Below, one piece after another: positions 1,386 to 54,997 of a stretch of 64,000 nt of DNA. This DNA comes from Mobula hypostoma (taxonomy: Eukaryota). Under the pieces are notes generated by a model. It was given only the letters and a program-made list of their open reading frames with translations, made no database searches and was not told the DNA's origin. How positions within the stretch are numbered: position 1 is the first letter of the stretch; the number at the start of each line of letters is the position of its first letter. The translations under genes were made by a program, and so were the position numbers. The stretch covers positions 18,228,001-18,292,000 of the forward strand of contig NC_086123.1 of NCBI RefSeq assembly GCF_963921235.1, given 5' to 3'.

Positions 1386-2417
1386 CTAGTTCACACGGAC
1401 CGGGATCGATCGGATGGCTGATGCAGAGCTCGTTTGCTGTTCAACAGTCTGCTCCTTTGTAGATGTTCCTTGTTCAGTGGCTGATCTGCGACAGTTTAAA
1501 TTAAGACGAATTAGAGCTTTCTCCAAACCATTTTTAAACTGCGATGTACAAAAATAGTAAATAATTGGATCGACCACACTGTTCAGATACGTTATAAACA
1601 ACGTATTGTAAAAGATATTCACTGTTATGTGATACGACTTGCAGTCGAATGGATTTCTTAGTTTAGTCACCAAAACCGCGACCACAGCAACACTGGTGGG
1701 CAAGAAGCAAATGACAAAAACCGCAGCCACGGCTATCACAAGTTTCACAGTTCGCTCATATTTAGCCCGCATTCCAACTTCCATCTGCCGTAACCTCCAG
1801 ATGATGGAGGACGTAGAGAACAGGATAACTGAAACTGGCAAAAGAAACTTAAAGAATATAAAAATAAAGTCAGTCCAAATTGCTGTGGGACGCAGAGCCT
1901 TGTTTATGCTGAAAGGCTCACAGTTTGTCACGTTGTGTTGTTCGAAGTCATGTTTGCCTATCAGCAAGTGCAAGCAAATAGCCACCGCTACAATCCACAG
2001 ACCGCCTGCTATCATCACCGCACACCTTGTAGAGATCTTGTTTACCTTGTGGAGTGGATGGATCACCTTAAAGTAACGATCGATCGCAATAACCATGAGG
2101 AAAAAGACGCTGCCAATCCGGTTCAGGGAAATCATGAATATGTTCAGTCGACACAGTCCATCACCAAAAATCCAGTCCTTCCCTCGGATAAAATAATCAG
2201 CTCGAAAAGGTAGACAGCACATTAACAGAGTGTCGGCAATCATGAGATGCAGTGAATATATAATACTTGGTTTCCGCGACGTCACATGAACACAAAAGAT
2301 CCACAAAGCAATCGTATTTCCAGCAAGCCCGAGGATGAATGTGATGATAATTATGGGCGGGTTGTAGGACGAGTTAACATCTTCACTAGGAGCACATTGC
2401 GGGGTCGAGTTCGCCAT
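1386..2417 (-). CDS. Hydroxycarboxylic acid receptor-like (HCAR/GPR109-like) class A GPCR, copy A1, 343 aa, single exon
   Basis: Seven hydrophobic segments with GN (TM1), LMIAD..CLPFR (TM2), WIFGD..C, MISLNRIGS..DRY..HP (TM3), CEPF (ECL2), CFLP (TM6) and TYLNSVVDPIIYYF (TM7). These match HCAR-type motifs (NRxGS, DRY..VHP, TYxNSxxDPxxYYF). Start context is ACAATGG. Confidence 0.93.
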   Translation of the reverse strand: MANSTPQCAPSEDVNSSYNPPIIIITFILGLAGNTIALWIFCVHVTSRKPSIIYSLHLMIADTLLMCCLPFRADYFIRGKDWIFGDGLCRLNIFMISLNRIGSVFFLMVIAIDRYFKVIHPLHKVNKISTRCAVMIAGGLWIVAVAICLHLLIGKHDFEQHNVTNCEPFSINKALRPTAIWTDFIFIFFKFLLPVSVILFSTSSIIWRLRQMEVGMRAKYERTVKLVIAVAAVFVICFLPTSVAVVAVLVTKLRNPFDCKSYHITVNIFYNTLFITYLNSVVDPIIYYFCTSQFKNGLEKALIRLNLNCRRSATEQGTSTKEQTVEQQTSSASAIRSIPVRVN

Positions 2418-2514
2418 TGTGCGAAAAAGTCAAGTTGTGTCCGGGGAGAGCAAACTCAATCAGAGTCGAACAACCTGTAAAGTTGATCTTCGAATGAGTT
2501 TGTTCCCCTGTGGG

Positions 2515-2555
2515 TGGAGTATATGGGCGGAGTGAAATAGTCAGAGCACCAATAA
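2515..2555 (-). promoter_or_regulatory. Putative proximal promoter: CCAAT, GC box and CATATA about 100-135 nt upstream of the ATG
   Basis: Plus strand TATATGGGCGG (minus CCGCCCATATA) is kept in all six recent copies, including the diverged B-type flanks (about 19096, 25542, 32058, 47001, 55100). CCAAT near 2549 is seen only in A copies. Confidence 0.4.
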
Positions 2556-2936
2556 ATTGTGCGATCGAATCATCAATTCCAGGAAAACTGGAAGCATCAG
2601 TATTTAAATTAAGCAGCAAACAATGAAATATATTTAGCTTTCATTGCCAGTTTATGCTTCAGTATGTAGGTCTTTCATTTTACTTTCTTTGAATTTCAAC
2701 AGTTTTTGATTATCTTTTGAGATGGAGACGACTCCCTGAACATCATCTGGTACCAGTGAAGGTGCTGTATTTAAACAAATCTTCTTTATTTTAAGGATTT
2801 GTAATATAGAAGTCCATCTACTTCCTCTGGTTTGGGGAAGTGATTCAGCTTGAGTGACATGGCTACTGAACAGAATGGTTTCACAATATCTGAGTGGATC
2901 AATATCTATCCTGGTGTGCAATGGGGATGCTGAGAG

Positions 2937-3630
2937 TGTCACAGATTGGGGCGCTGGTGCAGGCCCAAATGCAAGACACAGACACTGAAGTACTAGGGAC
3001 AGGTCTAGGATGCAGGACCTGGGCTCAGACATGGACAAGAAACAGGGAACCCAGACAAAGAACCATGAACTCAAAGCCTGGGCTTGGGAAAGCGGGACCA
3101 GGACTAGGAACCATGAACTAGGAACTGGGCTTGGACTCTGAGCCAGAGACTGGACAAGGACCTAGAAGCTGGGTCTTGCCTCAGGCTTGGACCCCAGAAC
3201 TAGGCAAGGACATGACATGGCTACAGGACAGGACGTGACTGGGGTCTTGAGGCTTGAGGCTGGGGTCTTGAGTCTTGAGGCTTGAGGCTGGGGTCTTGAT
3301 TCTGCAGGCTGGGGACTTAAGTCTTGAGGCTGTAGGCTGGGAGCTGGGGTTTTGGAATGTGGAGGCTGATAACTTGGAGGCTGGAGCTCAGAGACAGACT
3401 AGGAACTGAACATCAACATAGATTCGGGACTTATCCTTCAAAAAGCTGGGACTCATCTTTATCTCCACACCACGGTGGGAAAGGTCCATCCGTCATGTAA
3501 CGGCAGAACGGCTGGACTTACCCAACAGAGGCAAAGAGAAGACAGGTCCCCCCACAGGGCAATGGCAGAACGGCCTGACTTCCCCACGGAGGTGAGGACA
3601 AGACAACACAGATCCCCCAGGACTTGAGCT
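2937..3630. mobile_element. Truncated solo-LTR-like element (same insertion as 55513-56627)
   Basis: Starts TGTCACAG after GAGAG. The site is empty in A2 (about 26448). The right part has been lost by a deletion that joins to TGACC..GGATTTGTAAAGG. Confidence 0.65.
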
Positions 3631-4249
3631 GACCGGGATTTGTAAAGGAATCTGGAAATGGGGATCTCAAATGTTGAGTACACCTGATCATGGGGACTCT
3701 AGCTTTTTAACCTCTTTTCAAGTAGGTCTGGAATCAAGCATCACTCAAGTCACACATGGGAAAAGCAGGACCTGGGGATCGACTGTTGCTGAATATATCT
3801 CCAGCAGTGTGAATGCTGAGAATGTTACTGTACGAGCTGAGTGGAGGGAGAGTGTGACGGAGAGGGATCAGCAGCGACACAGGCTCTTCCAAGTCATCCA
3901 ACAGGCAGAAGCTTGGATCTACTTTGGCTGTCAGGTTATCGATACACTCGAAACAGTACACCAGAAATGAATGCAGGACCAGGCCATAGAGATCCCTGAA
4001 TTTCACCCAGAATTCACTCAGATCATCACCTCAACACTTGCTGCACATTGGCACAAATGGCAGAACCTCTGCCTCACTGCACCAGAACTCTGGGTTCAAA
4101 ACATAACCCTGGATTCCTTTGGGTCTGGAGTTTGTACATTCACCCTGGACGACATGGGCTTCCTCTGGGTGCTTCAGTACCCCTGCCACCTTGCAAACAA
4201 ATGCATGTCAGTAGATGAATGTCCTGCTGTAAATCGCTACAAATATTAC

Positions 4250-4590
4250 ACCATTGGGCCATAAGGTATAGGTGCACAATTAGGGTATTTGGCCCATTGA
4301 CTTTGCTTTCATCATCGCTGACACATTTCCCGTCTCAGCCCCAACCTCCTGTCTTCTCCCCCTCTCCCTTCTTCATTAATTTAGGATCTACAAACCTCTG
4401 CCTTAAATATACCCAATACCCTGGCTTCCACAGCCACCTGTGGCATCGAATTACACAGAGTCACCACACTCTGGCTAAAAGAAATCTCTCCTGATCTCCA
4501 TTCTAAAAGGACGTCCCTGTATTATAAGGCTGTATCCTCTGGTCTTAGACACCCGAACCATAGCAAACATCTTCTCCACAGCTTCTCTTG
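4250..4590 (-). mobile_element. Decayed CR1/L2-type LINE 3' end (paralogs at about 34040-34370 and 57700-58030)
   Basis: The paralogs read MF..V..SKTRGYSL.I.G.PFR.E.RRNFFSQ.VV..NS.P on the minus strand, like the C-terminus of the better preserved CR1 at 47488-48114. Confidence 0.65.
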
Positions 4591-5464
4591 GTAGGTGGCA
4601 GAGTGTGGGAGAAACCAAGGAATATGTGGGGAGAAATTTTAAAATATTTGATTAATTTAGTATTTGGGTAAATGGATTCTTGACAGTCACCAGAAACATA
4701 AAGGCGTAACTTGTTAATTTCTCCCCGTGACTTATAGAATTAAGGATATCTGTATTCAAACCCAGAAGTTTTAAGTTGCTAGTTGCCATAAACCACACGG
4801 AATATGCAGCTTGTCACGCACATGGAACGGTGGAAAGCCTCACTCTCAATTACTCAGCTTCATTCACCAACAGCTCATTAACCATATTAGGAACAATTCC
4901 TCATTCCATTCCTTCACTCAGACTGACACAATCCCTTCCCATCCAGGAAACTTGGTGCTAATCTAAAAGAAAGATGAGTTACTCAGAGTGGAAGTGTGAC
5001 CTTATGTTCTCATCAAAGCCACCAATTTCGGGATTTAGGCAAAAGTCCATAACAGCCACTGCCAGTGAAGAATACTGCCGGTACAGTAACTGCCGACCAG
5101 AATGCCCAGGAACCTGTTTTCAACCTGGGTAAAGACGGATGATGGCAGATTCCAAATGATCTCCCGGAGTATCCGAGCAGCCTTGCGGTGAGGTTATTGA
5201 AACAGTGGAGGAACCAGCCTGGTGAAGATCAAAGGCGCAAAACCTCATCACTTGGACTTCTATCAGGTTCCCTCATATTGCCTGTGTGTTATCCTGCCAG
5301 TGTTACACGGAGGCGGCTGGAGCGACTGGCAGCGGACCCAAGTGCAGGACACAAGCATGGAGACAGACTAAACAGAAATGTATTTATTGATAGCTACGAA
5401 GAAGGCCAGGTAGTGAGGATAAAAAGCCAACAAGGACATGAACGTTGGATAACAAACTAGCAAA

Positions 5465-6075
5465 ACCTGGACTTAGACTTCAGCTCGGACACGGAGCCTG
5501 GACCTGGACTCGGGCTCAGACACAAACCCTGGACTTAAACTCAGAACTTGGACCTCGACTTAAGCTCAGGTACGGAGACTGGACTTGGACTCAGAACCTG
5601 AACATGGACTTCAGCTCGGACAGGGAGCCTGGACTTGGACTCGGACTTGGACACAAACTCTGGACTTCAACTCAGAACCTGGACTTGGAATTGGACTCAG
5701 ACACGGAACCGGAACTCAGACTTGTACTCGATCAAAGTGCCAGGACACAGAACCTGGACTTAGACTTGGACTTGAACACTGAACTTCAACTTGGGCTCAG
5801 GCACAGAGTCTGGACATAGACTTGGACTCAGAGCCAGGACATGAACTTGGACTTCCACCCAGAACCTGGACCTGGGCTTGGACTCGGAGGCAGGACTTAG
5901 ACTTCGACTTCAAACCTGAACTTGGCCTTGGACACAGAGCCAGGACATAGACTTGGACTTGGGCTTGGGCTTGGGCTTGGACTTGGAAACTGGACTTGGG
6001 CTTGGACTCTGGACTTGAACTTGGGCTCGGACACAGAGCCGGGCCTTAGACTTCGACTTGGACTAGGACTCGGAA
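5465..6075. repeat. Degenerate GGACTT/GGACTC/GGGCTT hexamer minisatellite (also about 35265-35895 and 58770-59340)
   Basis: Seen directly in the sequence. It produces the spurious LGLG/WTWT/LDLD ORFs. Confidence 0.9.
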
Positions 6076-6077
6076 CG

Positions 6078-6305
6078 ACAAAACAACAACAGTCCATTCG
6101 AGTAGCAGCAAATGGCATGCCAACTGAGCTGGATATGAGACGACAAAACAACGACAGTCCATTCGAGTAGCGACAAATGGCCTGCCTACTGAGCTGGATA
6201 CAAGACAACTAAACAACGACAGGCCATTTGAGTAGCGGCAAACGGACTGCCTACTCAGCCCGATACAAGATGATGAAATCCAAACCACAACAGTCCATTC
6301 GAATC
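6078..6305. repeat. 65-bp tandem repeat (about 3.5 copies)
   Basis: Unit AAACAACGACAGTCCATTCGAGTAGC..CTACTGAGCTGGATACGAGA starts at about 6078, 6143 and 6208, plus a partial copy. Confidence 0.85.
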
Positions 6306-6814
6306 TCGGCTTGGAGAACTGGCCACCCGCCAGCAAATCTCAGCTGGCCATGGAAACGGCAGAGTTCGTACCTTTGGCTCGGAGTGGCAGCAAACGGCTG
6401 GCAAGTCAGTTGGACACGAAAACAATCAAATCCACAAAGCAAACCTGGGCACCGGAGGCACTTACAGAGTCCACAATGAACGGGGACCCGAATCGGGTAC
6501 AACTGCAGTTGCTCAGGTGACGGTCCAGCACCGAGTAGCTGTTAGCTGGAGTTTTTACGCTGCCGGCTCGGATGGGAAATGGCTGCCTTAATCAAGACAC
6601 CCGATGCACAACAGGGAAAAGGAATTAACTGGAATGAGGAGTCAATGGACTGGACCGGGACAGCCAGGAATGCCAGTGCCCATGCTGAGATATACAATAT
6701 GAACTCCTGTATTTGAGTCCCAAACCACCAGACAATCCTTCATTGCCATCTGCATTTCTACATCACTGAAGGCCTTTGGCTTTCCTCCAGTCATGGTGCC
6801 ATCACTGGGGACAT

Positions 6815-7030
6815 GACTGCCTCACTCAACAAATGCAAGGTGCCATCTGACTGTGGGAACCCCTGGCCTACAGCTGTTCAAAGTAGAGAAGGAGCATTCG
6901 GAATGGAACTGAGAAGTTCATGCCCATACTTCAGAAACGCTACAAAGAGCTGCGTAATTAGTAGGTGGAGCAGACCACCTCTGCTACACCCACTCCACAC
7001 CCTGTCAGGAAGCAACTGCCCATCTGTGGA
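6815..7030 (+). mobile_element. Ancient RTE-clade LINE 3' relic (paralogs at about 21885, 28400, 36570, 49545, 60210)
   Basis: With one frameshift it reads ASLNKCKVPSD/WEPLAYSCSK*RRSIRNG, resembling an RTE ORF C-terminus. A DDGR/IPNDL RTE-like motif occurs at about 5140. Confidence 0.55.
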
Positions 7031-7034
7031 GGAC

Positions 7035-7365
7035 CATAAATCCATCGTAAGATATTGGATCAGAATTAGGCTATTGGGACCATCGAGTCTGATCCTCTAT
7101 TTAATTATGCCTGAGTTTCTGTTTTCAACTCCAGTCTCCCAACTTCACCCTACAACCCTTAAACCCCTTCATGATCAAGAACCTATAAGTCATTGTCTTA
7201 AATACACTCAATGATTTGGCCTCCTCTGCCCTATATGACAATGAATTCCACAGATTCCCCACACTCTGCCTGTGGAAATTGCTCATTTCAGTTCCAAAGA
7301 GACCTCCCATTATTTTGAGGCTGTGCCCTTGGTTCCTTGGATCATCCCCTACTAATAGAAACATC
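7035..7365 (-). mobile_element. Decayed CR1-type LINE 3' end (paralogs at about 22110-22480, 36790-37125, 49775-50140, 60425-60780)
   Basis: The minus frame gives MF.LVG..R.QGHSLKI.G..F.TEM.NF..QSVGNLWNSL. Confidence 0.65.
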
Positions 7366-7884
7366 CATGACTAATTACCTCAGAATGGGGAAAAAAAACA
7401 TCTACATGAATGGACAGGAGTGGACAATGTTCCTTATCTGAAGAGGTGGAGATATTGCAAACCTGTTGTATATTTAATATTCTGTAATATTTGAGTCATA
7501 CCATATATTTTTATTTGTTGATTAAGGATTCTTCCTATAATTAACATTAATTTCTATGTAAGTTACATTAATTGCCTACGTCATTGCATGATAAGGGTGC
7601 GCCTCATTGGAAGTAAAAGAACAACGGCAAGACTCGCATCTTTCAGCTCTTGTTTGGTTTTGAATTGAATCTTGATTACTCAGAGGATAGTGAGGGTGTG
7701 GAACCAGCTTCCAGCACAGTAGTGCAAGTGAGTTCAATATCAATGTGTTAAGAGAAGTTTGGATTGGTACATGGATGGTAGGTGTTTGGAAGGCTATGGT
7801 CCTGGTGGAGGTCATTGAGAGTAGGCAGCTTAAATGGTTTGGTATGGACTAGAGAGGCCCAAAGGCCTGTTTCTGTGCTGTACT

Positions 7885-8028
7885 CTATGATTTTACATGA
7901 AAATAAAATACCTACAAAGCAGTTATATTTCTGACTAGTCATAGGATGATTGTTATAATAACTACTGGTGGGCTGTCAGCAGGGTTGTCCACCTCACTAG
8001 AGACACATTGATGGGCCGATTTATCCAT
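7885..8028 (-). pseudogene. Ancient HCAR-like paralog remnant (N-terminus/TM1)
   Basis: Translates MDKSAHQCVSSEVDNPADSPPVVIITIIL*LVRNITAL*VFYFHVKS*, collinear with A1 MANSTPQCAPSEDVNSSYNPPIIIITFILGLAGNTIALWIFCVHVTSR. Confidence 0.85.
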
Positions 8029-9972
8029 TGTCCAAAGAAAACTTATTCAAAGATTATACTGTTTGTATACAGCAAAATTCAGAGCATCATAATTCGGAGT
8101 TCAAAATTCAACATTGCTGCTAGAAAGCATAAGATGTAATGCGATGAAATACAAGCGGCATTGTTATCAGAGTTTGCTAAGTCATGACATACTTTGATTT
8201 GATATTAAGTACTTAATCCATTTCTATGGTCCTATTAAAACTATAAAATTTTCTTTAGGATTCAGAGTTCACTCCATATTCTGCTGAAATGCAAATTCTC
8301 TAACTAAATAAAAATTATCCAATTGGAAACTCATCCTATCCCAGCTCCCATCACAAACTAGTAAATTGTCCCAGCAGGTGCCCCGAATGAGATTAGCAAA
8401 ATATTATTCAAATCCACCTCATTGATACACTTCACTCACAGAGAGATAACAAGACTCCCAGTGTAGATTTTCTGTTTCCACAAGGATCTGCTGAATGAAG
8501 GTTAAAAGTGAATTCTACTCTCCTTCATGCAGCCTGGAGATGACTTATTATGGTTGTTGGAAGAATAGTTCCTCAGGCCACACTCCATCATGGTGTTTGT
8601 AACGTGGTGAGGCAGTTCAGTCTATATTAAAGTCATTCACTGCTGCACTGCTGACCTACTCATAGCAATAAATTCCTAGCATACATATGCATGCACGCAC
8701 TTCAGTCACAAACGTGTATGTGAGCACGCACACACACACAAAACCATGCATCACATAGTTCTTAAACATTCTAGTTACCACAGTACAACTGTCTGCACGT
8801 GTGTCATTGTGCATGTGTGTGCAGATACGTGTTTAGGTTCATGCAGGTCAGCGTGAAATACTAGGACAAAAGACACAAGAAATATGTTGATTAGATCCCA
8901 GGGGAAAAAGAACTTACTATCTCTGTATCATATTGTCCTTGGTTGTGAAGACATTCTTCAAATGGTATGTTCAGTGTTTATTTCATTCGACACTGCCCTC
9001 TAATCTGGGAGTTCTTCACTGGAAACAATGACTCACACAAATCTTTTATTTCCAAGGAATTAAAGATCAAATAAATTGCTATATAAGCCATTGGAGTAGA
9101 ATTGGGCCATTCGGCCCATCGAGTCTATTCCATCATTCCATCATGGTTGCTTTATTATTGCTCTCAACACCATTCTCCTGCCTACTCCCCGTAACCTTAC
9201 TAATCAACAACCTATCAAACTCCACTTTAATTATACTTGGCTCAATAACCATCTCTGGCAAAGAATTCCACAGATTCGCCAGCCTATCGTTAAAGAAATT
9301 CCTCCACATCTCTGTTCTAAATGCTGACCATCCTTCTTCATTACAGATTTCAATTTTATTTCCTGAAAATAAATTCCCCGATTTTGAACCGGAGCTAACC
9401 TCCTGTCTCCAGTTCCAGTTCACTAGGAGAGGCTTTTCTTTTCCAATTCAGTACCTAGTTCCAGTACTGTCACGATATGGGTACATGCAGCTTGGCACCA
9501 GCACAGCGGCCCCTAACATCACTTTCCTCCTGACTGAAAGTCCACTGGTAGGGTTCTTCTTGATTGACTTGATTACCGCTGATTCTAGTGGGCAGTCAGT
9601 CAACCTGAGAATGGCCCACTATCACGTGTAGAAGCTAGCTACAAACAAGACACATAAGCTGAAGTCCTCTGGGGGAAAAAATAAATTTTAACTATCCATA
9701 AACCCTTTCCTTTAAAGCAGGGGTTCCCAACCTGGGGTCCACTCACTGGGAAGCCTCCATGGCACATAAAAGATTGGGAAACAACGACTTAAAGACAGGA
9801 AGGGTTTCTTAACGAACACGCTCTGAATATGCGTACTTATGCAGTTAAAATACAATTTCATCTCCACATAAAGGGAAGCGTATTTGAGAACTGGCTTGTT
9901 AAGATCCGAGCAACACACATAAAAGTTGCTGGTGAACGCAGCAGGCCAGGCAGCATCTCTAGGAAGAGGTAC

Positions 9973-10008
9973 AATCGATGTTTCAGGCCAAGATCCTTCG
10001 TCAGGACG
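9973..10008 (-). ncRNA. Minimal type I hammerhead ribozyme motif in the pLTR (stem III mutated)
   Basis: Minus strand reads GTC-CTGACGA-AGGATCTTGGCCT-GAAACATC-GAT. The core is kept, but the ACGT palindrome has changed to ACAT. Confidence 0.6.
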
Positions 10009-11405
10009 AACTGAAGGAAGAGTGAGTAAGGGATTTGAAAGTTGGAGGGGGAGGGGGAGATCCAAAATGATAGGAGAAGACAGGAGGGGGAGGGATGGAG
10101 CCAAGAGCTGGACAGGTGATAGGCAAAAGGGATACAAGAGAGGATCATGGGACAGGAGGTCCGGGAAGAAAGACAAGGTGGGGGGGGGACCCAGAGGATG
10201 GGCAAGGGGTATATTCAGAGGGACAGAGGGAGAAAAAGAAGAGTGAGAGAAAGAATTTGTGTATAAAAATAAGTAACAGATGGGGTAAGAGGGGGAGGTG
10301 GGGCATTAGCGGAAGATGGAGAAGTCGATGTTCATGCCATCAGGTTGGAGGCTACCCAGACGGAATATAAGGTGTTGTTCCTCCAACCTGAGTGTGGCTT
10401 CATCTTTACAGTAGAGGAGGCCGTGGATAGACATGTCAGAATGGGAATGGGATGTGGAATTAAAATGTGTGGCCACTGGGAGATCCTGCTTTCTCTGGCG
10501 GACAGAGCGTAGGTGTTCAGCAAAGCGGTCTCCCAGTCTGCGTCGGGTCTCGCCAATATATAAAAGGCCACATCGGGAGCACCGGATGCAGTATATCACC
10601 CCAGCCGACTCACAGGTGAAGTGTTGCCTCACCTGGAAGGACTGTTTGGGGCCCTGAATGGTGGTAAGGGAGGAAGTGTAAGGGCATGTGTAGCACTTGT
10701 TCCGCTTACACGGATAAGTGCCAGGAGGGAGATCAGTGGGGAGGGATGGGGGGGACGAATGGACAAGGGAGTCGCGTAGGGAGCGATCCCTGCGGAATGC
10801 AGAAAGAGTGGGGGAGGGAAAGATGTGCTTAGTGGTGGGATCCCGTTGGAGGTGGCGGAAGTTACGGAGAATAATATGTTGGATCCGAAGGCTGGTGGGG
10901 TGGTAGATGAGGACCAGGGGAACCCTATTCCTAGTGGGGTGGCATGAGGATGGAGTGAGAGCAGATGTACGTGAAATGGGGGAGATGCATTTAAGAGCAG
11001 AGTTGATAGTGGAGGAAGGGAAGCCCCTTTCTTTAAAAAAGGAAGACATCTCCCTCGTCCTAGAATGGAAAGCCTCATCCTGAGAGCAGATGCGGCGGAG
11101 ACGAAGGAATTGCGAGAAGGGGATGGCGTTTTCGCAAGAGACAGGGTGAGAAGAGGAATAGTCCAGATAGCTGTGAGAGTCAGTAGGCTTATAGTAGACA
11201 TCAGTGGATGAGCTGTCTCCAGAGATAGAGACAGAAAGATCTAGAAAGGGGAGGGAGGTGTCGGAAATGGACCAGGTAAACTTGAGGGCAGGGTGAAAGT
11301 TGGAGGCAAAGTTAATAAAATCAACGAGCTCTGCATGCGTGCAGGAAGCAGCACCAATGCAGTCGTCGATGCAGCGAAGGAAAAGTGGGGGACAGATACT
11401 AGAAT

Positions 11406-11795
11406 TTTTTTAAATTTCAAAATATACTTTATTCAAAAATAAATATATACAATAAACCATTCAATAACTTTTCATCCTTTACACACGTTTCCATTATAGT
11501 CAGTACATATCCGTATTTATAGCCACCCACGTGGCACTCCAGTAGTTCAGCTTACCATATCATTGTTGAGGGGTATACTCCCCGCCCACCGACCCCTCCC
11601 ACTCCCACGGGTGGAGAAACCTATACCGTGGTCCTTCCCCACCGGGTCCTTGCGGTGACTGCACCGAGTTTCAGTGCGTCCCTCAGCACGTACTCCTGCA
11701 GCCGAGAATGTGCCAGTCGGCAGCATTCTCCCACGGACATCTCCATGTGCTGGTAGATCATCAAGTTTCGGGCCGACCAAAGAGAGTCTTTCACC
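11406..11795 (-). mobile_element. Tx1-like LINE 3' end nested in the Penelope RT
   Basis: T-run tail at 11405-11411 and GAAT duplicated at 11402-11405 and 11796-11799. The ORF ends KDSLWSARN..CCRLAHSRLQEYVLRD..RWG. The sequence is absent from the other Penelope arm (about 12385). Confidence 0.8.
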
Positions 11796-12243
11796 GAATA
11801 GGCACGGAACATAGATTGTTCCACAAAGCCAACAAAAAGGCAGGCATAGCTAGGACCCATACGGGTGCCCATAGCTACACCTTTAGTTTGGAGGAAGTGG
11901 GAGGAGACAAAGGGGAAATTATTAAGAGTAAGGACTAATTCCACTAGACGGTGCAGAGTGGTGGTAGAGGGGAACTGATTAGGTCTGGAATCCAAAAAGA
12001 AGCGTAGAGCTTTGAGACCTTCCTGATGGGGGATGGAAGTATATAGGGACTGGACATCCATGGTGAAAATAAAGCGGTGGGGGCCAGGGAACTTAAAATC
12101 ATCGAAAAGTTTAAGAGCGTGAGAAGTGTCACGAACATAGGTAGGAAGGGATTGAACAAGGGGCGATAAAACCGTGTCGAGGTATGCAGAAACGAGTTCG
12201 GTGGGGCAGGAGCAAGCTGAGACAACAGGTCGGCAAGGAGGTA

Positions 12244-13910: not shown

Positions 13911-13969
13911 TTGTTAACATCCGAGTTTTGGTGCACCAACATTTTCAGAATTGATCAATTTCTGCGTTC

Positions 13970-34900: not shown

Positions 34901-35098
34901 TGCCCAGGAATCTGATTTCAACCTGGATAAAGACAGATGATGGCAGATTCCAAACGGTCTCCCGGAGTATCAGAGCAGCCCTGCAGTGAGGTTATTGAAA
35001 CAGTGGAGGAACCAGCCTGGTGAAGATCAAAGGCGCAAAACCTCATCACTTGGACTTCTATCAGGTTCCCTCATATTGCCTGTGTGTTATCCTGCCAG

Positions 35099-41705: not shown

Positions 41706-44700
41706 GAGTATGTGTTTAGGAGAAGAAGATAGCGGTTGTTCTTTGACCGAGGTTCTCTTTTGGGAGGAGGGAGGGGGATGGGAAGTTCTTTTTTCTTGAA
41801 GTTGATTTGGGAATCTACTCAATTCTGTTGCTTAGCTAATATATTTCAAGGTTTATTATTTGGGTTTAATTTATATTTTTCTGATTGCTATTTTAACTTT
41901 TCTTTTAATAGTTTTAAAATGGAACAAAGTATTAATTTACTCAGTTTTAACGTGAAAGAGCTAAATCAGCCCATGAAAAGAAATAAGATTTTTGCGTGTA
42001 TTAAAAAGCTTAATGTACCAATTGTTTTTCTTCAAGAAACACATATACGTACATGTGACAATTCACGCCTTTTTAATCGATGCAGACAATCTCATTTCCA
42101 TTCCTCCTCTCAGACCAAAGCCTGAGCTGTTTCGATCCTTATAGCTGTTTCCATCCTTTTTCACAACATAAAGTAATTTCTGATACTAATGGGCATTTTG
42201 TTATAGTATCAGAAAACTAAATAACAAATTAGTGGTTTTTGCCACTGTATATCCTCCGAATATAGATGACCCAGGTTTCTTTGAGCGTTTTTTTCCATTT
42301 TTGCCAGATCTAAGTCTATACTCATTGGTGATGGGTGGAGACGTTAATTGTTGCTTAGCTCCAGTTTTGGATCATTCATCTTCTAAACTAATGATACCAA
42401 ATAAATCAGCACTGTTTATTAAATCTTTTTAAATGAAATGTGGTATTATTGATGCTTGGTGTTTTTTTTTTCCATCCAGTGGACAAGGAATATTCATTTT
42501 TCACTCATGTCCATCATCCATATTCCAGGATTGATTTTGTTTTTATTGATAGCCAGATGATTCCATTAGTTTGATCCTGTGTATACAAAGAGATTGCTGT
42601 TTCAGATCACGCTCATGTATTTCTATCTTTAAATCTCCCTGGTCTTCTTCAAACAAATAGATTTTGGTGATTTAATCTAACTTTGTTATCTGATAAAGAT
42701 TTTTTAAACTTTATGGAGAGACAAACTACATTTTTTTGAAGAGAATACGTTAGAGGAGACCTCCAGTCACACAGATGGGATGACTTTAAGACGTATATTA
42801 GAGGACAAATTATTTCTTATACTGCAAGTATTAAGAAAAAAGCTAATAAAGAGAGAAGTGATTTAGCTAATCAGCTGAAACAGTTAGACCAAGAGTATGC
42901 CTTGGCTCTAGAACCTGCCTTATTTAAAAGATGTGTGGAAATTAAAACTAAATATGATCTCCTTTTAACTTATCCAATTGAAACGCAACTCCTAAAAGAT
43001 AAAAGTCAATTTTATATTCATGGAGATAAAACAGGTAAATTATTGGTGGATCAAATTAAAACCATTATAGCTAAACAACAGATTAAAGAAATATGCAAAG
43101 CTAATGGTGATAGGATGACTGGTTATTAAGAAATAAATGATACTCCTAGAGAATTTTACCCTAAACTTTATACTTCTGAATCTTCTAAGGATAACACTGT
43201 AATGAACAATTTTTTAGATCAACTCAACATTCCTGCAATTTCTGCTGACAACAGAAAGCTGTTGGAACAACCTATTTTTTTTTTTAGGAAATTGTCGAGG
43301 CTGTGCTCTCATCACATTTGAAAAAAGCTCTGGGTCCAGATGGATTTTCTGGAGAATTTTACAAGACCTTTTCCTCACTGCTTATACCTCATTTATCTTC
43401 AGTTTTTTTGAATTCATTTAAATTGGGCAGACTCCCTCAATCTTTTTATGAGGCTTCCATTTCTCTTATTCTTAAGAAGAAATAGGATCCAACTGAATGC
43501 TCTTCTTATAAACCAATCTCTTTCGTTAACATTGATTCTAAGATCCTATCTAAAGTTTTGGCCCATAGGATTGTAAATATTTTACCATCTGTCATTTCTG
43601 ATAAACAAACTGGATTTATCAAAAATTGATATTCTCACTTTAATATTCATCAGTTATTACATGTTAATTATCCTCCTTCTAATATGATATCAGAATGTGG
43701 GGTATCGCTAGACGCTGAGAAAGCTTTCGACAGGGTTGAATGAAATTACTTATTTAAAACTGTAGAAAAATTCAATTTTGGACCCGTTTTCATTCAATGG
43801 ATTAAATTACTTTATTTAGCTCCTTCCGCTAGGGTTATCACTAATCCTCATAATTCCAAACCATCTAAGCTTCAATGTGGTGCTAGACAAGGCTGTCCAT
43901 TGAGCCCTTTGCTTTTTGATCTGGCCTTAGAACCCTTATCCTTTGCCTTTCGAGAATCTAATGATTTCACTGGTATTTTAAGGAGAGACACTATTCATAA
44001 AGTCTTGCTGTATGCTGAAGATCGCCTGCTATTTATTTCTAATGTTGAGACTTCATTACCCCATGTGCTTTCTTTCCTTTCCTTTTTCAGCCAGTTCTCA
44101 GGTTATAAATTAAACCTATATTAAAGTTAATTTTTTCCTTTCAACAATTTGAAACCAACAAATTCTAACCTTCCTTTTAAAAATATAAGAAACCAATTTA
44201 CCTGCTTAGGTGTAACAATCACTAAAAACTGTAAGTGTCTCTTTAAAGAAAATTTTCTTATCCTATTGAATCCCATAAAAAGGACACTATCAAATTGGTC
44301 GCCTCTTCCGTTATCACTGATTGGTCGAATCAACTCTATCAAACTGAATATATTACCTAAATTTATATATCTTTTTCGGGCATTGCCAGTTTTTATTCCT
44401 AAATCCTTTTTTGATTCCCTTGACTCTATTATATCTTCTTATATCTGGAAGAATAAGCGTTCTAGTTCAGTTTCAGTTTCAGGGTTCTGAGAATACACAT
44501 CTCAGAAGACCTTACATGGCCCACTAACACCACAACAATGGTTAAGAAAGCACAACAACACTTGTTTTTCCTCAGGACACTGAAGAAAGCTGGTCTACCT
44601 GAACAGATGCTGGTGACCTTTTACCATTGCACCATAGAGAACATCTTAACATACTGCATCTCTGTGTGGTATCTCAGTTGTACAGCAGCCGATAAGAAAT

Positions 44701-46671
44701 CACTTCAGTGGGTCATCTCTAGCGCACAGAAGATCATCGGGACACAGCTCCCAGCCCTGGAGGACACATACAGCTCTCACTGCCTAAGGAAAACTACAAG
44801 CATCTGTAAGGACAATACACACCCATGCAATCATCTGTTTGATCTTCTTCCATCTGGCAGACGTTATAAGATTTTCTATTCCCGCACTTCCAGACTGAAA
44901 AATAGCTTTTTCCCCCCAGAGCTATACTTGCTCTGAACCAATCGATCAAGCATCATCCATAACTTTGTTATATTGCTACTTTAATACTGGTTTTATGATT
45001 GTCAGGTATCTGAGTTGTGCTTTTGTACTGCTGGGCACTGCTTCTACTGGCTGGTTACTTGACTTTAGTTGTTGTTTATTTATTTTATTTGTTGTTTTTA
45101 GCATTGAGTATGAAAGTTGCAAACTTATTTTCGCTGCATTGGTGCATGACAAATTGTACTATGCAATGACAATAAAGATATTTCATTTCATTTCATTTCT
45201 AGATTAAACAAAATTCATCTTCACAAAGATAAAAAGAATGGAGGATTAGCCTTACCAAACTTTAGATTTTATTATTGGGCAGTTAATATAAGAAATCTTA
45301 CATTCTGGTTATATTACATAAATCATGAGGATTGCCCAATGTGGATTTTTTAGAAGCTATCTCTGCTAATAAATTCTCTATTATTTCTCTTCTTGGATCC
45401 TCACTCCCTTTGTCTCTGAGTAAGTCAACTGATAATCTGGTAGATAAACACACCAAGAGAATTTGGATACAATTTCAAAAATATTTTGGCTTATTGAGAT
45501 TTTCTTTTTCGAGTCCTATTTTTTCCAATTATTTTTTTAAACTCTCTATGATTGATGTGGCTTTAAAAGAATGAGATAGATTAGGTATTAAATGCTTTCA
45601 GGACTTGTTTGTAGAGGGAGGCCTTTTTTTGTTTGAACGACTGTCAACTAAATATAGTTTACCCAAAACTCACTTTTTCGATACCTACAAGTAAGAGATT
45701 TTTTACGGTCTCAAGTAAGTACATTTCCTAAAAGTCCTGATAAGAATCTACTATATGTAATCTTTAATTTGAAACCTTTTTACAATGGATTTATATCTAA
45801 TATTTATAATATGCTGCTGGGAATGAAAAGGGTTCCTTTAGATAAAATTAAACATCTTGGGAAACAAGATTTACAGACTTCAATTTCTCAGATAACTTGG
45901 AATCAAATTTTTTAATTGGTTAACACTTCATCGTTATGTGCTCGGCACTCTCTCCTACAATTTATAGTGGTCCATAGGGCCCATTTGACTAAGGATAAGT
46001 TGTCATCTTTATTTGGATATATCTCTGTATTGTGATACATGTAATAATCGGGAAGCTTCACTCATTCATATGTTTTAGACCTGCCCGTGTCTTGGAAAAT
46101 TTGGAAAGAAGCATTTCAAACTTTCTCAATACATTTAAAGTAAACTTTACGCCTAATCCTTTGACTGCTTTATTTGGTATTGTTGGATGAAAGGATATTA
46201 TTTTGGAGTCATCTGACTTGCACATCTTGGCTTTTAGGTCCCTATGGCCAGAAGGATGCTTTTGCTTAAATGGAAAGATGCAACCCCTCCTATTCACGCC
46301 CTATGGTTATGTGATGTCATGTCATGTTTAAATTTAGAGAACATTCGATGTTCAATCTCTGAATCTACTCAGGACTTTCAAACATTGTGGGGATCTTTTC
46401 TGAATTATTTTCAAAACCTTTGATTTGCTGTTAAAGCACAGATGATGACTGATAATTAATTTTCCTTTTTTTCTTTATTAATCAGCTTCGGTCTTGGTAG
46501 TGGGTTAGATTTTTTTAATATAATAAAATTATTATTTTTCAATGTTACAAATTAATTAACTTGTATGAATATAGGGTAAGAGTCTTTACATGCGATTTTG
46601 TATAATGTTTTGATATTTTTTCCTGTACTCTATTTTTATATGTAAATTAATTAATAAAAATATAGGAAAAG
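41706..46671 (+). mobile_element. Decayed L1-clade LINE (ORF2), same insertion as 13970-18764
   Basis: Collinear with the first copy and has the same 3' junction (GAAAACGTAGACAGCAC). There is a probable short GAAA TSD. Confidence 0.93.
44466..45196 (+). mobile_element. Rex1/Babar-like fragment nested in the L1 (same insertion as 16568-17285)
   Basis: Same site and TTCTAG TSD. Confidence 0.8.
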
Positions 46672-47417
46672 GAAAACGTAGACAGCACATTAACAGAGTG
46701 TCCACAATCATAAGATTCAGTAAATACACAATACTTGGTTTCTGCGACTTCACATGAACACAAAAAATTCATAAAGCAATCGTATTTCCAGCAAGCCAGA
46801 GGATGAATGTGACGATAATTACCAGCGGATTGTAGGATGAGTTAATATCTTCACCAGGTGCACATTGTGGGGTCGAGTTCGCCATTGTGCGAAAAGGCGG
46901 TCACACAGTCAAGATGTTCAGAGGGGAACAAACTCATTCGGAGGGAAACAGCCTTACAAGCTGATCTTCTTCGAATGAGTTTGTTCTCCTGTGGGTGCAG
47001 TATATGGGCGGACTGAATTAGTCAGAGATGCCCGATGAAATCATCAACTTCCAGGAAATCTAGAGGCACAAGCATTCAGATTAAGGAGCAGACAATTAAA
47101 TATATCTGATTCTCACATTTCTTCCGCAGTCTGATGTTTTGTTTAAACAACAACTGTACCCCTTGACCATGACTGCATGTTTTCATGCATTGAGTCTCTG
47201 ACACATTAACCACGAGGTTCAAGAACAGTTACTACCCTCCAACCATCAAGCTCTTGAACAAAAGAGGACAACTGCACTCATTTTGTTTCTGTTGTTCCTA
47301 CAATCAAAAGTTCTCACTTTAAGCACACTTTACTTTGTTATTTCATGTCCGTCTTATTCACTGCTCGTTATTTAGATCTGCATTTGCACCTTTTGTTGTT
47401 CGTTGATCTTGCTTACA

Positions 47418-48794: not shown

Positions 48795-50775
48795 TTACAG
48801 TTACTGATCTGTAGATTTACTGCATGCCCACAGGGAAAAGAGTCTCAGGGTTGTACATGGTGACGTGTCTCTACTCTAACAATCAATTTTAGTTTGAAAT
48901 TTGAACTTTTCAACTTGGAACATGATTGCCTGATTGGATAATTATCGATAATTATCAAGCTGGTGGGCAGGTCTGCTTCATAAAATAGTCACTATTGGGA
49001 TTCAGGTCAAAGTCCGTAATGGCCACTGGCCACTGTGAATGGAAGGCTACTGCAGGTACAGTACCTGCTGACCAGAATTCCTGGGAGTTCTGTTGATATC
49101 ATCTTAGATAAAGACTGAAGATGATGGATTCCAAAGGGTCTCCCAGGGTATCAGAGCAGACCTGCTGTCAGATAATTTAACCACTGGAGGCACTAGCCTG
49201 GTGAAGATCAGAGGCACCAAGCGTTATCACTCGGACTTATTTCATAATTTACTGGCATAATTTACATATTACTATTTAACTATTTATGGTTCTATTACTA
49301 TTTATTATTTATGGTGCAACTATAACGAAAACCAATTTCCCCCGGATCAATAAAGTGTGACTACTACTACTACTACTTCTATCAGGTTCCCCCTATAGCA
49401 GGTGAGTTATTCTGCAGTGCTCATGCTGAGAAATACAAAACGAATTCAAGCCTTTGTGTCCCAATGTTCAGACAATCCTTCATTGCCACCTCAATTTCTA
49501 CTTCACTTCAATCCTTCAGCCTTCCTCCAATCTTGCTGCCGTCACTGCGGACACGTCTGCCTCATTCAACAAATATGAATAACCACGCCGACTTTGTGAA
49601 ACCCTGGCCAACGGCTACTCAAAGTACAGAAGGCACATTGAGGATGGAACTGAGAAGCCCATGCCCATACTTCAGAAACGCAGGAAAGAGCTGCGTTATT
49701 AGTAGGAGGAGCAGACCACCTCACCTACACCCACTCCGCACCCTGTCAGGAAGAATCTGCTCATCTGTGGAGGACCATAAAACCATCAAAAGGTATTGGA
49801 TCAGAACTAAGCTAATCGGACCAGCGAGTCTGCTGCACTACTTAATCATGGCTGAGTTTCTGTTTCCAACTCCAGTCTCCCAACTTCATCCTATAACCCT
49901 TAAAACCCCCTTAACAATCAAGAACCTATAAATCTTGTCTTAATTACACTCAATGATTTGGCCCCAAACACCCTATATAACAATGAATTCCACAGACTCC
50001 CCACACTCAGGCTGCGGAAAATTCTCAGCTCAGTTCTAAAGAGATGACCCTTCATTCTGGGGCTGTGCCCTTGGATCCTAGACCTTTGGATCCTTGGATC
50101 CTCTCCCACTAATGGAAACATCCTCTGCACATCTACATTATCAGGGTTTGTGGTTTCTCATATTGGGATGACTGATTACCTCAGAATGGAAAATAAAAGC
50201 ATCCATAGGAACAGACAGGAGTAGATAATGTTCCTATTCTGCACAGATGGACATATTGCACCCTGCATGCATTTAATATTTTGTAATAGTTGAGTACTCT
50301 TGTATATAGATTGATTAATTAAGGATTCTTGTTAAAATTAGTATAAATTTCTATGTAAATTACGTTATTTGGACATGTCATCACATGATACGGACACGCA
50401 TCGCTTGAAGTAAAAGAACAAAGTTAAAACTCACATCTCTCGGTTCTTGTTTTCTTTTGAGTCAGTTTAAAGTTTTGGAGCCACAAAACATAACCCAGTG
50501 ACCCCAGGCCACGCTCGATCATGGTGCTTGTAATGTGGTGAGGCAGTTCAGTCTATCTTAAAGTCATTCACTGCTGCACTGCTGCCCTACTCAGAATAAT
50601 AAATACCTGTGAGCTCAATTTCAAAGTTCAGGTGAATTTTGGGCAGGTATATGCATGGTAGGCAAATGGAGGGCTATGGACCCGGTGAAGGTCAATGACA
50701 GTAGGCATCTTAAATGGTTTGGTACGGACTAGATCAGCCAAAGGGCCTGTTTCTGTGCTGTACTTTTCCTTGACG

Positions 50776-50919
50776 CTAAGATTTTACATGAAAATAAAAT
50801 ATCTACAAAGCAGTTGTATTTCTGACTAGTCCTAGGATGATTGTTATCATAACTACTGGTGGGCTGTGAGCAGGATTGACGACCTCACTAGAGACACATT
50901 GCTGGGATTATTTCTCCAT
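50776..50919 (-). pseudogene. Ancient HCAR-like remnant (N-terminus/TM1)
   Basis: Homologous to 23112-23255. Confidence 0.8.
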
Positions 50920-52406: not shown

Positions 52407-53212
52407 TTTCAAGATCAAATAAATTTCTGTTTTTTGACATTCCTGGATGGGTCTCAACAGGTAAGCAAAATTACTTTAATATTGGTAAATCAGAGTGGAT
52501 TTTATAATATCCTGGTAACTTCAGTGACACCCATAACACATAGGAGAAGAATTAGTCCATTCAGCCCATCGACTCTGTTCTACCATTCCATCACGGTAGC
52601 TTTACTATCGCTCTGAACCCACTCTCATGCCTTCTGGCCAGGAGTTAGCAATCAAGAACCTATCAACCTCTGCTTTAAATATACCCAATGACTTGTCCTC
52701 CACAACCACCTCTGGCAGTGAATTCCACAGACTGACCATCTTCTTGTAAAAGAAATCCCTCCATATCTCCGTTCTAAATACTGATCATCTTTAATTAATG
52801 ATGACCATCCTTCTTCAGTACTGATAATCTTTCTTCATTCCAGATTTCAATTTAATTTACGGAAAATAAACTCCCCAGTTTTGAACCGACGCTTCACTTC
52901 CTCTCTCCAGTTCACCAGAAAAGGCTTTTCTTTGGCACCATTCCAGCAACCGCTTACAACACTTTGCTACTGACTGAAAGTCTACAGGTAGCATTGAACT
53001 TGGTTGAATAATATTACTGCAGATTCCTCTGGACAGTCAGTCAACCTGAGAATGGCCTACTATAACGGGCAGAAGCTAGCTACAAATGAGACACAGAGGC
53101 TGAAATCATCTGAGGAAGTAATTGCTTATATGGAAAGAGAAAATCTTAATATATCCATAAACCCGTTCCTTCAAAACAGGGGTTCCCAACCTGGGATTCA
53201 CGGAACCCTTAC

Positions 53213-53740
53213 TGTTTTCTTAACAAAACTATAGAAGTTTATTTACATCACATATGCACAAGGTACAGACAGTCAATATTTACAAGACAGTAAGTATACT
53301 CAAATTTAAAAATGGTTAGTACCGTCTATAAGACAATCAATACCTCGTGGGGGGGGGCAACAGCTCACGGATGTCCCCACAATGTGCCCGTCGCAACCGC
53401 GTGCTCCCTCTCCAGGTACAGTCGGGCACGAACGTTTCCTCAGAAAAGGGGCAGGCAGTCGGCCCGGGCAGCGCCCGCCCTCCACTTTCCTCCGCCATGC
53501 CTGTGAATGGCCATCTTGGCCAGACCCAGGACAAAGACCGCCAGCAGATCCTCCTCACGCCCCCGCGCCCTCCCGACACCCACCCTAATTGAATCGGGAC
53601 CAGAACCCCCCAGCAGCCAGAAGCACCCAGCCTGGATGAGGCCAGACCCCGTCCCCTCCATAGTTCCCGGTAAAAACGGCGTAGTTCCCTCAGAGCAGCA
53701 CGTCATCCGGAATCCGCGTGCCCTCCTGGCAAAATAAAAT
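53213..53740 (-). mobile_element. Tx1-like 3' fragment with an internal deletion (paralog of 213-1160)
   Basis: Reads EEDLLAVFVLGLAKMAIH..ADCLPLF; about 0.4 kb shorter than the A1 copy. Confidence 0.75.
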
Positions 53741-53971
53741 GGGGAACTCATGCTTTAAAGACAGGGTTTCTTCATAAACAACCTCTGAAATAAACTTACT
53801 TTATGTAGATAACATGCAATAACTTCTCTACATATAAAAGGAAGTGTATTTCAGAACTTGTTACTTAAAATCAACTTATCTCGCACCAACATTTTCAGAA
53901 TTGATCAATTTTTGCGTCCGGTCGCATTCATCAGCTTTACTTTGATCACTCAACAATAAAGAGCATCTTGT

Positions 53972-54997
53972 TCACGCGGACCAGGAACATTGGATGGCTG
54001 CTGATGAGCTCGTTTGCTGATCCACAGTCTGCTCTTCTGTAGATGTTCCTTGTTCAGTGGCTGATCTGCGACAGCTTAAATTAAGAGGAAGCAGAGCTTT
54101 CTCCAAACCATCTTTAAACTGCGAAGTAGAAAAATAGTAAATAATGGGATCGACCACACTGTTCAGATACGTTATAAACAACGTATTGTAAAAGATATTC
54201 GCTGCTATGTGATACGACTTGCTGTCAATTGACCTTCTCAGTTTAGTCACCAAAACCGCGACCACAGCAACACTGCTGGGCAAGAAAAAAATGACAAAAA
54301 CCGCAGCCACGGCTATCACAAGTTTCACAGTTCGCTTATATTTCGCCCGCATTCCAGCTTCCATCTGCCGTAACCTCCAGATGATGGAGGACGTAGAGAA
54401 CAGGATAACTGAAACTGGCAAAAGAAACTGAAAAAATATAAAAATAAAGCCAGTCCAAAGTGCTGTGGGACGTAGATCCTTCGTTATGCTGAAAGGCTCA
54501 CAGTTTGTCACGTTGTGTTGTTCGAAGTCAAGTTCGTCTATCAGCAAGTGCAAGCAAATAGCCACCGCTACAATCCACAGACCGCCTGCTATCATCACCG
54601 CACACCTTGTAGAGATCCTGTTTACCTTGTGGAGTGGATGGACCACCTTAAAGTAACGATCGATCGCTATAACCATGAGGAAAAAGACGCTTCCAGTTCG
54701 GTTCAGGGAAATCATGAAAACGTTCAGTCGACACAGTCCATCACCAAAACTCCAGTCCTTCCCTCGGATAAAATAAACAGCTCGTAAAGGTAGACAGCAC
54801 AGTAACAGAGTGTCTGCAATCATGAGATTCAGTGAATATATAATACTTGGTTTCCGCGACTTCACATGAACACAAAAGATCCACAAAGCAATCGTATTTC
54901 CAGCAAGCCCGAGGATTAATATGATGATAATTACGGGCGGGTTGTAGGATGAGTTAACATCTTCAGCAGGAACACATTGCGGGGTCGAGTTCGCCAT
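53972..54997 (-). CDS. HCAR-like GPCR, copy A3, 341 aa with altered extreme C-terminus
   Basis: Intact 7TM ORF that ends AAIQCSWSA instead of AIRSIPVRVN. Confidence 0.92.
   Translation of the reverse strand: MANSTPQCVPAEDVNSSYNPPVIIIILILGLAGNTIALWIFCVHVKSRKPSIIYSLNLMIADTLLLCCLPLRAVYFIRGKDWSFGDGLCRLNVFMISLNRTGSVFFLMVIAIDRYFKVVHPLHKVNRISTRCAVMIAGGLWIVAVAICLHLLIDELDFEQHNVTNCEPFSITKDLRPTALWTGFIFIFFQFLLPVSVILFSTSSIIWRLRQMEAGMRAKYKRTVKLVIAVAAVFVIFFLPSSVAVVAVLVTKLRRSIDSKSYHIAANIFYNTLFITYLNSVVDPIIYYFSTSQFKDGLEKALLPLNLSCRRSATEQGTSTEEQTVDQQTSSSAAIQCSWSA

Follow-up and report, generated by a model that had tools for sequence, protein, structure and literature searches.

A young, transposon-riddled tandem cluster of HCAR1-3-related receptor genes in the ray Mobula hypostoma, within an expansion confined to stingray-type rays

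How did genes related to the hydroxycarboxylic acid receptors (HCARs) come to be multiplied at one place in a ray genome, and what might their products sense? The question is raised by a 64,000-nucleotide stretch of Mobula hypostoma DNA (positions 18,228,001 to 18,292,000 of NC_086123.1, referred to here at its full length as the window), which is an internal part of an extensive tandem array of HCAR-family genes for G-protein-coupled receptors (GPCRs) of class A on a 39.5-Mb chromosome. Through HCARs, Gi signalling is linked to metabolic fuels (lactate, ketone bodies and medium-chain hydroxy acids); the mammalian set numbers just two or three genes. The array in the window is a young, transposon-riddled tandem cluster of HCAR1-3-related receptor genes, and its expansion is confined to stingray-type rays. 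We consider it likely that these genes belong to a shark-and-ray clade of the HCAR locus which expanded in tandem in Myliobatiformes, grew by copying of large blocks, decayed through transposon activity, and encodes what are predicted to be Gi-coupled receptors for small carboxylates. An initial annotation, made from the letters of the window, had proposed an expanded and diversifying array of HCAR-like receptors that might form a ketone-body sensing repertoire if the host was an elasmobranch. The host is indeed one, M. hypostoma being a batoid, and the HCAR-like identity, the expansion and the turnover of copies all stood up to analysis, but the diversification, the ketone-body sensing and the use of one arginine (Arg3.36) as a mark of HCARs did not.

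Besides four intact single-exon seven-transmembrane genes, the window contains two disrupted copies and six short remnants of the N-terminus, all on the minus strand, and it has no runs of N. The intact genes were taken from a listing of open reading frames (ORFs), and the broken copies and remnants were located by tblastn of the intact proteins on the window; the numbers and coordinates in the initial annotation agreed with both. The intact genes, all HCAR-like, are A1 (1386-2417, 343 aa), A2 (24408-25439, 343 aa, also detected by tblastn), A3 (30924-31955, 343 aa) and A4 (53972-54997, 341 aa), and all four products match Pfam 7tm_1 with E about 1e-48 (1.1e-47 for A1). As A3 shows 0 differences from A2 in 1032 nucleotides, there are just three distinct intact sequences in the window. 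The last ~8 residues of A4 are altered by a 5+1 bp indel. The array had been thought to run off the window edge, and self-comparison indicated that it does so at both edges, with 1-565 matching the 3′ flank of A4 and the last repeat block running to at least 63684.

The nearest characterized relatives of the window genes are HCARs, which are delta-branch GPCRs. In a phmmer search with A1 against all solved structures in the PDB, HCAR2 (5e-71), HCAR3 (4.6e-70) and HCAR1 (2e-66) were followed at a distance by GPR4 and CysLT2 (about 1e-35), and the identity of the window proteins was roughly 40-45% to the solved HCARs and 37-45% to bony-vertebrate relatives. The window genes carry the HCAR-family motifs IDRYF (DRY), VVDPIIY (D7.49PxxY), F6.48 and the cysteine pair C89/C166 (C3.25-C45.50); D7.49PxxY in place of NPxxY and F6.48 in place of W6.48 are HCAR motifs (PMC12040280). 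With HCAR1 they share about 43-45% identity, a single coding exon, DRY, DPxxY and F6.48. OXER1 and GPR31, the receptors for 5-oxo-ETE and 12-HETE, belong to the same superfamily and share R3.36, R2.60 and Y7.43 with the window genes, but seal OXER1 is less similar to them (35%, E 1.8e-49) than mammalian HCAR1 is (about 43%), and the OXER1 clade differs in having Glu in extracellular loop (ECL) 1, L, Q or R at 45.51, and G or A at 6.55. Relatives in some twenty sharks and rays are labelled 'hydroxycarboxylic acid receptor 1/2/3-like' in RefSeq, so that as gene models they are already known; no paper was found on this shark-and-ray clade or its expansion, and nothing relevant on HCARs in cartilaginous fishes.

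Two trees were built, a quick one of 124 rows and a careful one of 74 rows, anchored by mammalian HCAR1, elephant-shrew HCAR2-like, seal OXER1, and tarsier and newt GPR31, with lamprey and hagfish P2Y, CysLT and LPAR sequences as outgroups. The main shark and ray genes formed a single clade (support 100/100) found in sharks and rays only. Within it, the window genes fell in a clade restricted to Myliobatiformes (support 100) that is split into a Mobula group and a Hypanus plus Hemitrygon group, indicating either that most duplication occurred separately in the two families or that copies have been homogenised. The sister of A4 is P0013 of Mobula birostris (support 100/99), and A4 is therefore probably older than the split of the two Mobula species.

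The locus was examined through sharks. Three divergent HCAR1-like genes, from white shark (P0080), sevengill shark (P0082) and smooth-hound (P0079), each lie about 2 kb from KNTC1, tail-to-tail with it. On CM068661.1 of the sevengill shark Heptranchias perlo, the main-clade genes P0028 and P0032 lie 65 and 108 kb from the KNTC1-adjacent P0082 (24.674 and 24.631 Mb against 24.739 Mb). The primate HCAR cluster is flanked by KNTC1 and DENR (bioRxiv 10.64898/2026.01.23.701403), and zebrafish hcar1a/b adjoin denr, which marks the hcar locus (bioRxiv 10.1101/2020.05.13.069997). This proximity in Heptranchias indicates that the main clade was born by tandem duplication within the canonical HCAR locus, and it places the clade with HCARs by position as well as by similarity. 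The zebrafish genes resemble those of the window in being single-exon HCAR genes duplicated in tandem in a fish, and theirs lie at the conserved denr-marked locus; they differ in belonging to another clade and in numbering two, against 7-17 per ray genome, and the higher-order blocks and many pseudogenes are features of the ray array and not of the zebrafish pair. In M. hypostoma all HCAR-like proteins are encoded on one chromosome. OXER1 and GPR31 are not known from the KNTC1 locus.

Copy numbers, counted as annotated proteins in the subclade of the window, confirmed the expansion and confined its recent phase to Myliobatiformes. The sawfish Pristis pectinata has 1 gene in this subclade, Mobula hypostoma at least 7 (6 distinct proteins), Mobula birostris 9, and Hemitrygon akajei and Hypanus sabinus at least 14 each, and other sharks and rays have about 4-5 HCAR-like genes in total. 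Given the single gene in Pristis and the few elsewhere, the recent expansion is a Myliobatiform feature, and it exceeds the two or three genes of mammals, as had been claimed from the window. Expansions of GPCRs in single lineages are common.

The array is built from repeated blocks. Self-comparison of the window revealed three collinear blocks with 89-94% identity, at about 886-19414 (block I), 30426-47319 (block II) and 53568-63684 or beyond (block III). Each consists of an intact gene, here called beta (A1, A3 and A4, respectively), followed by an alpha unit. The two pseudogenes represent the alpha genes, one in block I and one in block II. The array would thus have been assembled from three copies of a 23-30-kb higher-order block, with A2 as an additional local copy derived from a 6.5-kb duplication; growth would have proceeded by unequal or non-homologous tandem duplication, and gene death by retrotransposon insertion, replacement by Penelope-like elements, stops and frameshifts. 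In this sense of turnover, duplication accompanied by transposon-driven decay, the birth-and-death evolution suggested for the array was borne out.

The 6.5-kb duplication lies head to tail at 20876-27392 and 27392-33908, and its copies are 100% identical over 6517 bp, the first carrying a remnant (23115-23255) and A2, the second a remnant (29631-29771) and A3. The junction consists of one shared T (1 bp of microhomology), and the borders are otherwise without homology. Sequencing runs of M. hypostoma, one of DNA and three putatively of RNA, supplied contigs that were placed on 22900-28899. None of the listed contigs, from the DNA run or the putative RNA runs, spans the junction at 27392, a site inside repeats with a contig depth of about 4e5, and the one RNA-run contig whose match ends at 27392 fits the right flank at 33908/33909 and is uninformative on the junction. 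The perfect duplicate may have arisen very recently by non-homologous tandem duplication, or it may be an artefact of assembly. Very high-copy interspersed repeats were observed at 25700-25899, 27300-27699 and 27900-28299, with DNA-run contig depths of 1e4-4e5, and these are also abundant in the putative RNA runs.

The broken copies show how the alpha units decayed. The first pseudogene, psi1 (18788-18979, minus strand), retains codons 1-64 only (87.5% in tblastn) and has an internal stop in translation. The second, psi2, is divided into a body covering aa 71-343 (40886-41705, minus strand; detected by tblastn in two frames and in the ORF translation, 84% identical to A2, with a frameshift near aa 308) and its N-terminal 71 codons (46673-46885, minus strand; found by tblastn), whose translation shows a Trp-to-stop change. 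In both units the alpha gene is interrupted by a long interspersed nuclear element (LINE) on the plus strand: the insertion at 13973-18787, with an RVT_1 ORF at 15660-16226 (E=7.5e-19), splits the alpha gene at about codon 64-71, and the homologous insertion at 41706-46672 lies between the body of psi2 and its first 71 codons. As psi1 and psi2 carry this ~5-kb insertion in common (13973-19414 versus 41873-47319, 90.6% identity in self-comparison), the alpha gene was dead before the blocks were copied, and there was one disruption, not two. In block I the place of the psi1 body is occupied by an inverted pair of elements within 9909-13873 (~1.5 kb per element; 9909-11405 versus 13873-12384 in self-blastn, 96% identical), and from their GIY-YIG ORF (10306-11049) these elements were read as Penelope-like retroelements.

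The six old remnants, all on the minus strand, correspond to codons 1-47 with 40-54% identity to the intact proteins in tblastn, and each lies 3′ of one repeat unit. The first four are 7888-8028 in the alpha unit of block I, with stops in its translation; 23115-23255 and 29631-29771 inside the first and second copies of the 6.5-kb duplication; and 38491-38631 in the alpha unit of block II, likewise translated. The fifth, also translated, is 3′ of A4 (50779-50901), and the last (61867-62007; tblastn, self-comparison and translation) belongs to the next alpha unit, whose gene is expected past the window end. The same Trp-to-stop change occurs in four of the five translated remnants, indicating one ancient fragment that was multiplied along with the duplications. 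The counts of intact genes, pseudogenes and remnants in the initial annotation are thus true, but the independent events behind them are fewer than the counts suggest, owing to the shared duplicate, LINE insertion and stop codon.

What the intact receptors might bind was approached through the ligand pocket, the residues of which were mapped by Ballesteros-Weinstein anchors, with the mapping checked against primate HCAR1 numbering. R99(3.36), Y268(7.43), E166(45.51) and R71(2.60) have been named as crucial for ligand recognition by HCAR1 (PMC12040280), and all four are kept in the window genes, as R100, Y277, E167 and R72, respectively (A1 numbering). Arg3.36 forms a salt bridge and Tyr7.43 a hydrogen bond with the ligand carboxylate (PMC12040280, PMC10628104); R100 and Y277 are present in A1, A2 and A4 and across the whole clade. 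The initial annotation had pointed to this arginine, in the motif LNR.GS, as kept in every copy that still has the third transmembrane helix, and this was correct (5 of 5 copies; R100, position 3.36). The residue is nevertheless unfit as an HCAR marker, as Arg3.36, together with Arg2.60 and Tyr7.43, also occurs in OXER1 and newt GPR31; Arg3.36 therefore marks a wider superfamily of receptors with carboxylate ligands, not HCARs specifically, and R2.60 looks ancestral to the whole superfamily.

Further HCAR1 pocket residues kept in the window genes are F168 (F169, 45.53), L264 (L273, 7.39) and a basic residue in ECL1 (R79 versus K80). The second shell, however, is unlike HCAR1 at 6 of 14 pocket positions: Y75(2.64) is replaced by Phe, L92(3.29) by Ile or Val, S167(45.52) by Pro, R240(6.55) by Val, H261(7.36) by Tyr and I262(7.37) by Asn. 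The window genes are not one-to-one orthologues of HCAR1, since sharks have another gene, next to KNTC1, in which the HCAR1-type pocket is nearly complete. At 6.55, all sampled main shark-and-ray members have Val (rarely Ile or Ala), and the KNTC1-linked shark genes have Arg. Compared with all sampled bony-vertebrate HCARs, Val6.55, Pro45.52 (mostly Ser there) and Asn7.37 are distinct, and Phe2.64 and Ile/Val3.29 are distinct from most. From this comparison, the products would be Gi-type receptors for a small (hydroxy-)carboxylic acid with an HCAR1-like design, in which, following the lactate receptor HCAR1 (GPR81), Arg3.36 and Tyr7.43 would grip the carboxylate, with Arg2.60 and Glu45.51 holding a polar group. 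Given the altered shell (Phe2.64, Ile/Val3.29, Pro45.52, Val6.55 and Asn7.37), the actual ligand may differ from lactate. Among A1, A2 and A4, pocket variation is confined to 3.29, 3.37, 5.39 and 6.51, and the core residues are nearly invariant among the paralogues.

The same residues bear on the proposal, raised from the window itself, that the receptors are adapted to elasmobranch fuel use by sensing beta-hydroxybutyrate, acetoacetate and related organic acids. The host is an elasmobranch, and elasmobranchs depend on ketone bodies at all times (PMC11320369); beta-hydroxybutyrate is sensed by HCAR2 in mammals (PMC12040280); and the Arg3.36/Tyr7.43 carboxylate anchor is retained, in a set of HCAR1-type anchors that would suit any small hydroxy-acid. 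HCAR2 and HCAR3 (GPR109A/B, which respond to beta-hydroxybutyrate, niacin and 3-hydroxyoctanoate) are also the top-scoring solved structures, and the equivalents of R111, F180 and Y284 are kept in the window genes. However, the HCAR2 selectivity residues L83(2.60), N86(2.63), W91(ECL1), S178(45.51) and S179(45.52) are R72, Tyr, K80, E167 and P168 in the window genes, so that the pocket resembles that of HCAR1 (R2.60 and E45.51, with Lys in ECL1) and not that of HCAR2 (L, S and W at these sites). The agonist selectivity of HCAR2 has been tied to its L2.60, the ECL1 Trp and S45.51 (PMC12040280, PMC10628104), and L83R in HCAR2 strongly reduces agonist activity (PMC12040280). Within the sampled set the HCAR2-type residues occur in mammalian sequences only and look like a mammalian novelty. 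In addition, the recent expansion is limited to Myliobatiformes, with a single gene in Pristis, whereas elasmobranchs in general rely on ketone bodies (PMC11320369). A ketone-body repertoire is thus very unlikely, and the idea lacks the support that the initial annotation sought for it in the array.

Whether the copies have diversified was examined in the three distinct intact genes and across paralogues. Pairwise ratios of nonsynonymous to synonymous divergence (dN/dS) by the Nei-Gojobori method were 0.69, 0.74 and 0.57, with dS of 0.07-0.10. Across 15 Mobula and 27 stingray sequences, the variable sites were spread over the protein, with an odds ratio (OR) of 1.4 (p=0.16) for the extracellular versus the intracellular half; the three window genes alone gave an extracellular enrichment of variable sites of OR 2.1 (p=0.025). 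Variability is among the highest in ECL2, ECL3 and the N-terminus. As dN/dS never exceeds 1, the core pocket is near-invariant and the extracellular enrichment is weak, the earlier label of a diversifying array is not supported. Divergence of the coding sequences (CDSs), 5.2-6.7%, is not below that of the aligned flanks, 4.3-5.1%. For 73-95 random substitutions, with 3.8% of point changes being nonsense, the probability of no stop is about 0.03-0.06, and in the first 336 codons no frameshift separates the distinct beta genes, against about 4 gap events predicted from the rate in the flanks. Some constraint is therefore likely, as the three beta genes keep full frames without gaps and the neighbouring alpha copies gained stops. 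The intact copies resemble recent duplicates under weak constraint, and not a repertoire demonstrably tuned to different ligands.

These patterns also bear on a chemosensory or immune role, in which external or microbial carboxylic acids would be sensed in olfactory organ, gill, gut or leukocytes and copy growth would reflect selection for breadth. Tandem birth-and-death with many pseudogenes offers an analogy to the rodent vomeronasal FPRs; a dN/dS of 0.57-0.74 is high for a metabolic GPCR; the expansions in Mobula and Dasyatidae look independent; the variability of ECL2, ECL3 and the N-terminus would fit; and zebrafish Hcar1 mediates butyrate sensing by neutrophils (bioRxiv 10.1101/2020.05.13.069997). 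Nevertheless, the pocket core hardly varies among paralogues, the extracellular enrichment in the larger sample is slight, and 10-17 genes are few for a chemosensory family, so that we regard such a role as improbable.

Expression was assessed from three small M. hypostoma runs, the RNA type of which is presumed only. In these putative RNA runs, low-depth contigs covered the CDS and 3′ untranslated region, and none covered single-copy intergenic DNA. The contigs encode open peptide segments with an exact match to no annotated paralogue, and would represent a further close paralogue or an allele of another individual. At least one further close paralogue, outside the copies in the window, is probably transcribed.

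Several observations weigh against the reading of the array as a constrained Myliobatiform expansion of HCAR-locus genes. The main shark-and-ray clade is joined to the KNTC1-linked shark genes at only 70/66, and the order of the shark-and-ray, bony-vertebrate HCAR and OXER1 plus GPR31 clades is weakly supported (backbone supports 70/66, 78/66 and 86/85). A clade of shark-and-ray genes with bony-vertebrate HCARs was not recovered; forcing it costs 1.06 log-likelihood units and is not rejected (approximately unbiased test, p=0.22). The locus placement rests on shark loci, and the ray array is placed there by clade membership, not by its own flanking genes. Arg6.55 (R240 in HCAR1, R251 in HCAR2), present in all sampled bony-vertebrate HCARs, is Val245 in the window genes. 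In only one of the three pairs (A2-A4, p=0.037) is dN/dS significantly below 1, so that decay into pseudogenes may be under way in some of the intact copies. The contigs of the RNA runs share about 97% identity with A2, and at diagnostic sites they agree with none of A1, A2, A4 and psi2. Finally, an assembly artefact could explain the perfect duplication of A2/A3, the junction of which falls in very high-copy repeats.

Some of these points would suit neutral churn, in which a duplication-prone, transposon-rich region recopies one functional gene and the extra copies are redundant or decaying, with A2/A3 maybe an artefact. CDS divergence no lower than flank divergence, two pairs out of three without a dN/dS significantly below 1, alpha genes already dead when copied, a perfect 6.5-kb duplicate with a 1-bp junction, variable sites across the whole protein, and RNA-run contigs that match no window copy exactly are all in its favour. 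On the other side, the three distinct beta genes are fully open at 5-7% divergence although the adjoining alpha copies gained stops, the pairing of A4 with P0013 of M. birostris (100/99) makes some copies look kept intact since the species split, and many intact copies have been retained in parallel in stingrays. Taken together, neutral churn is a possible but doubtful account of the whole array, and a Myliobatiform expansion of HCAR-locus receptors under some constraint is the reading we prefer.

The separate, strongly supported shark-and-ray clade at the HCAR locus, without Arg6.55, with the HCAR1 anchors kept and with 10-17 genes in stingray-type rays, is a natural mutant series for the relation between pocket and ligand choice, which matters as HCARs are a drug-target family; given the unusual fuel metabolism of elasmobranchs, a ligand for even one member would be informative. 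A related question is the fate of the KNTC1-type HCAR1-like gene in batoids. This gene is annotated as 'LOW QUALITY PROTEIN' in Pristis pectinata (P0325) and Mobula birostris (P0327), the Pristis gene carries R3.36Q, and a protein search with a KNTC1-linked shark query found no counterpart for M. hypostoma, Hypanus or Hemitrygon. The canonical KNTC1-linked gene may thus be decaying where the derived clade expanded, which we offer as a lead and not as a result. Combined with Val6.55, Pro45.52 and Asn7.37 in the subfamily, the low-quality batoid entries, R3.36Q and the missing counterparts raise the idea, which we judge a long shot, that stingray-type rays may replace the KNTC1-linked HCAR1 orthologue with an expanded, reshaped subfamily of new ligand specificities. 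If true, cartilaginous fishes would possess a repertoire of metabolite or chemosensory receptors that has been overlooked.

Some minor features of the window were also recorded. P0015, an annotated M. hypostoma paralogue of 314 aa, ends in '...FFQISH', and the same shifted C-terminal frame in psi2 reads 'LLQISH...' at 40821-41000; the frameshift in the tail may predate the duplication and occur in an otherwise intact gene. A near-perfect palindrome (40516-40632) follows the psi2 reading frame on its 3′ side at a distance of about 250-370 nt. Rfam gave no match at gathering thresholds anywhere in the window, and at about 40200-40900 it gave only sub-threshold miRNA-like matches to the palindrome, on either strand, with no hammerhead family among them. 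An ORF of 155-177 aa without a Pfam match occurs once per beta unit (21733-22266, 28249-28782 and 49464-49931) and probably arose by chance or is left over from an old transposon within the repeat unit. Minisatellites with periods of 62-131 bp are found at the same relative site in each block (5464-6270, 35262-35796 and 58771-59665), and a repetitive 151-aa ORF at 58771-59226 arises from the last of these.

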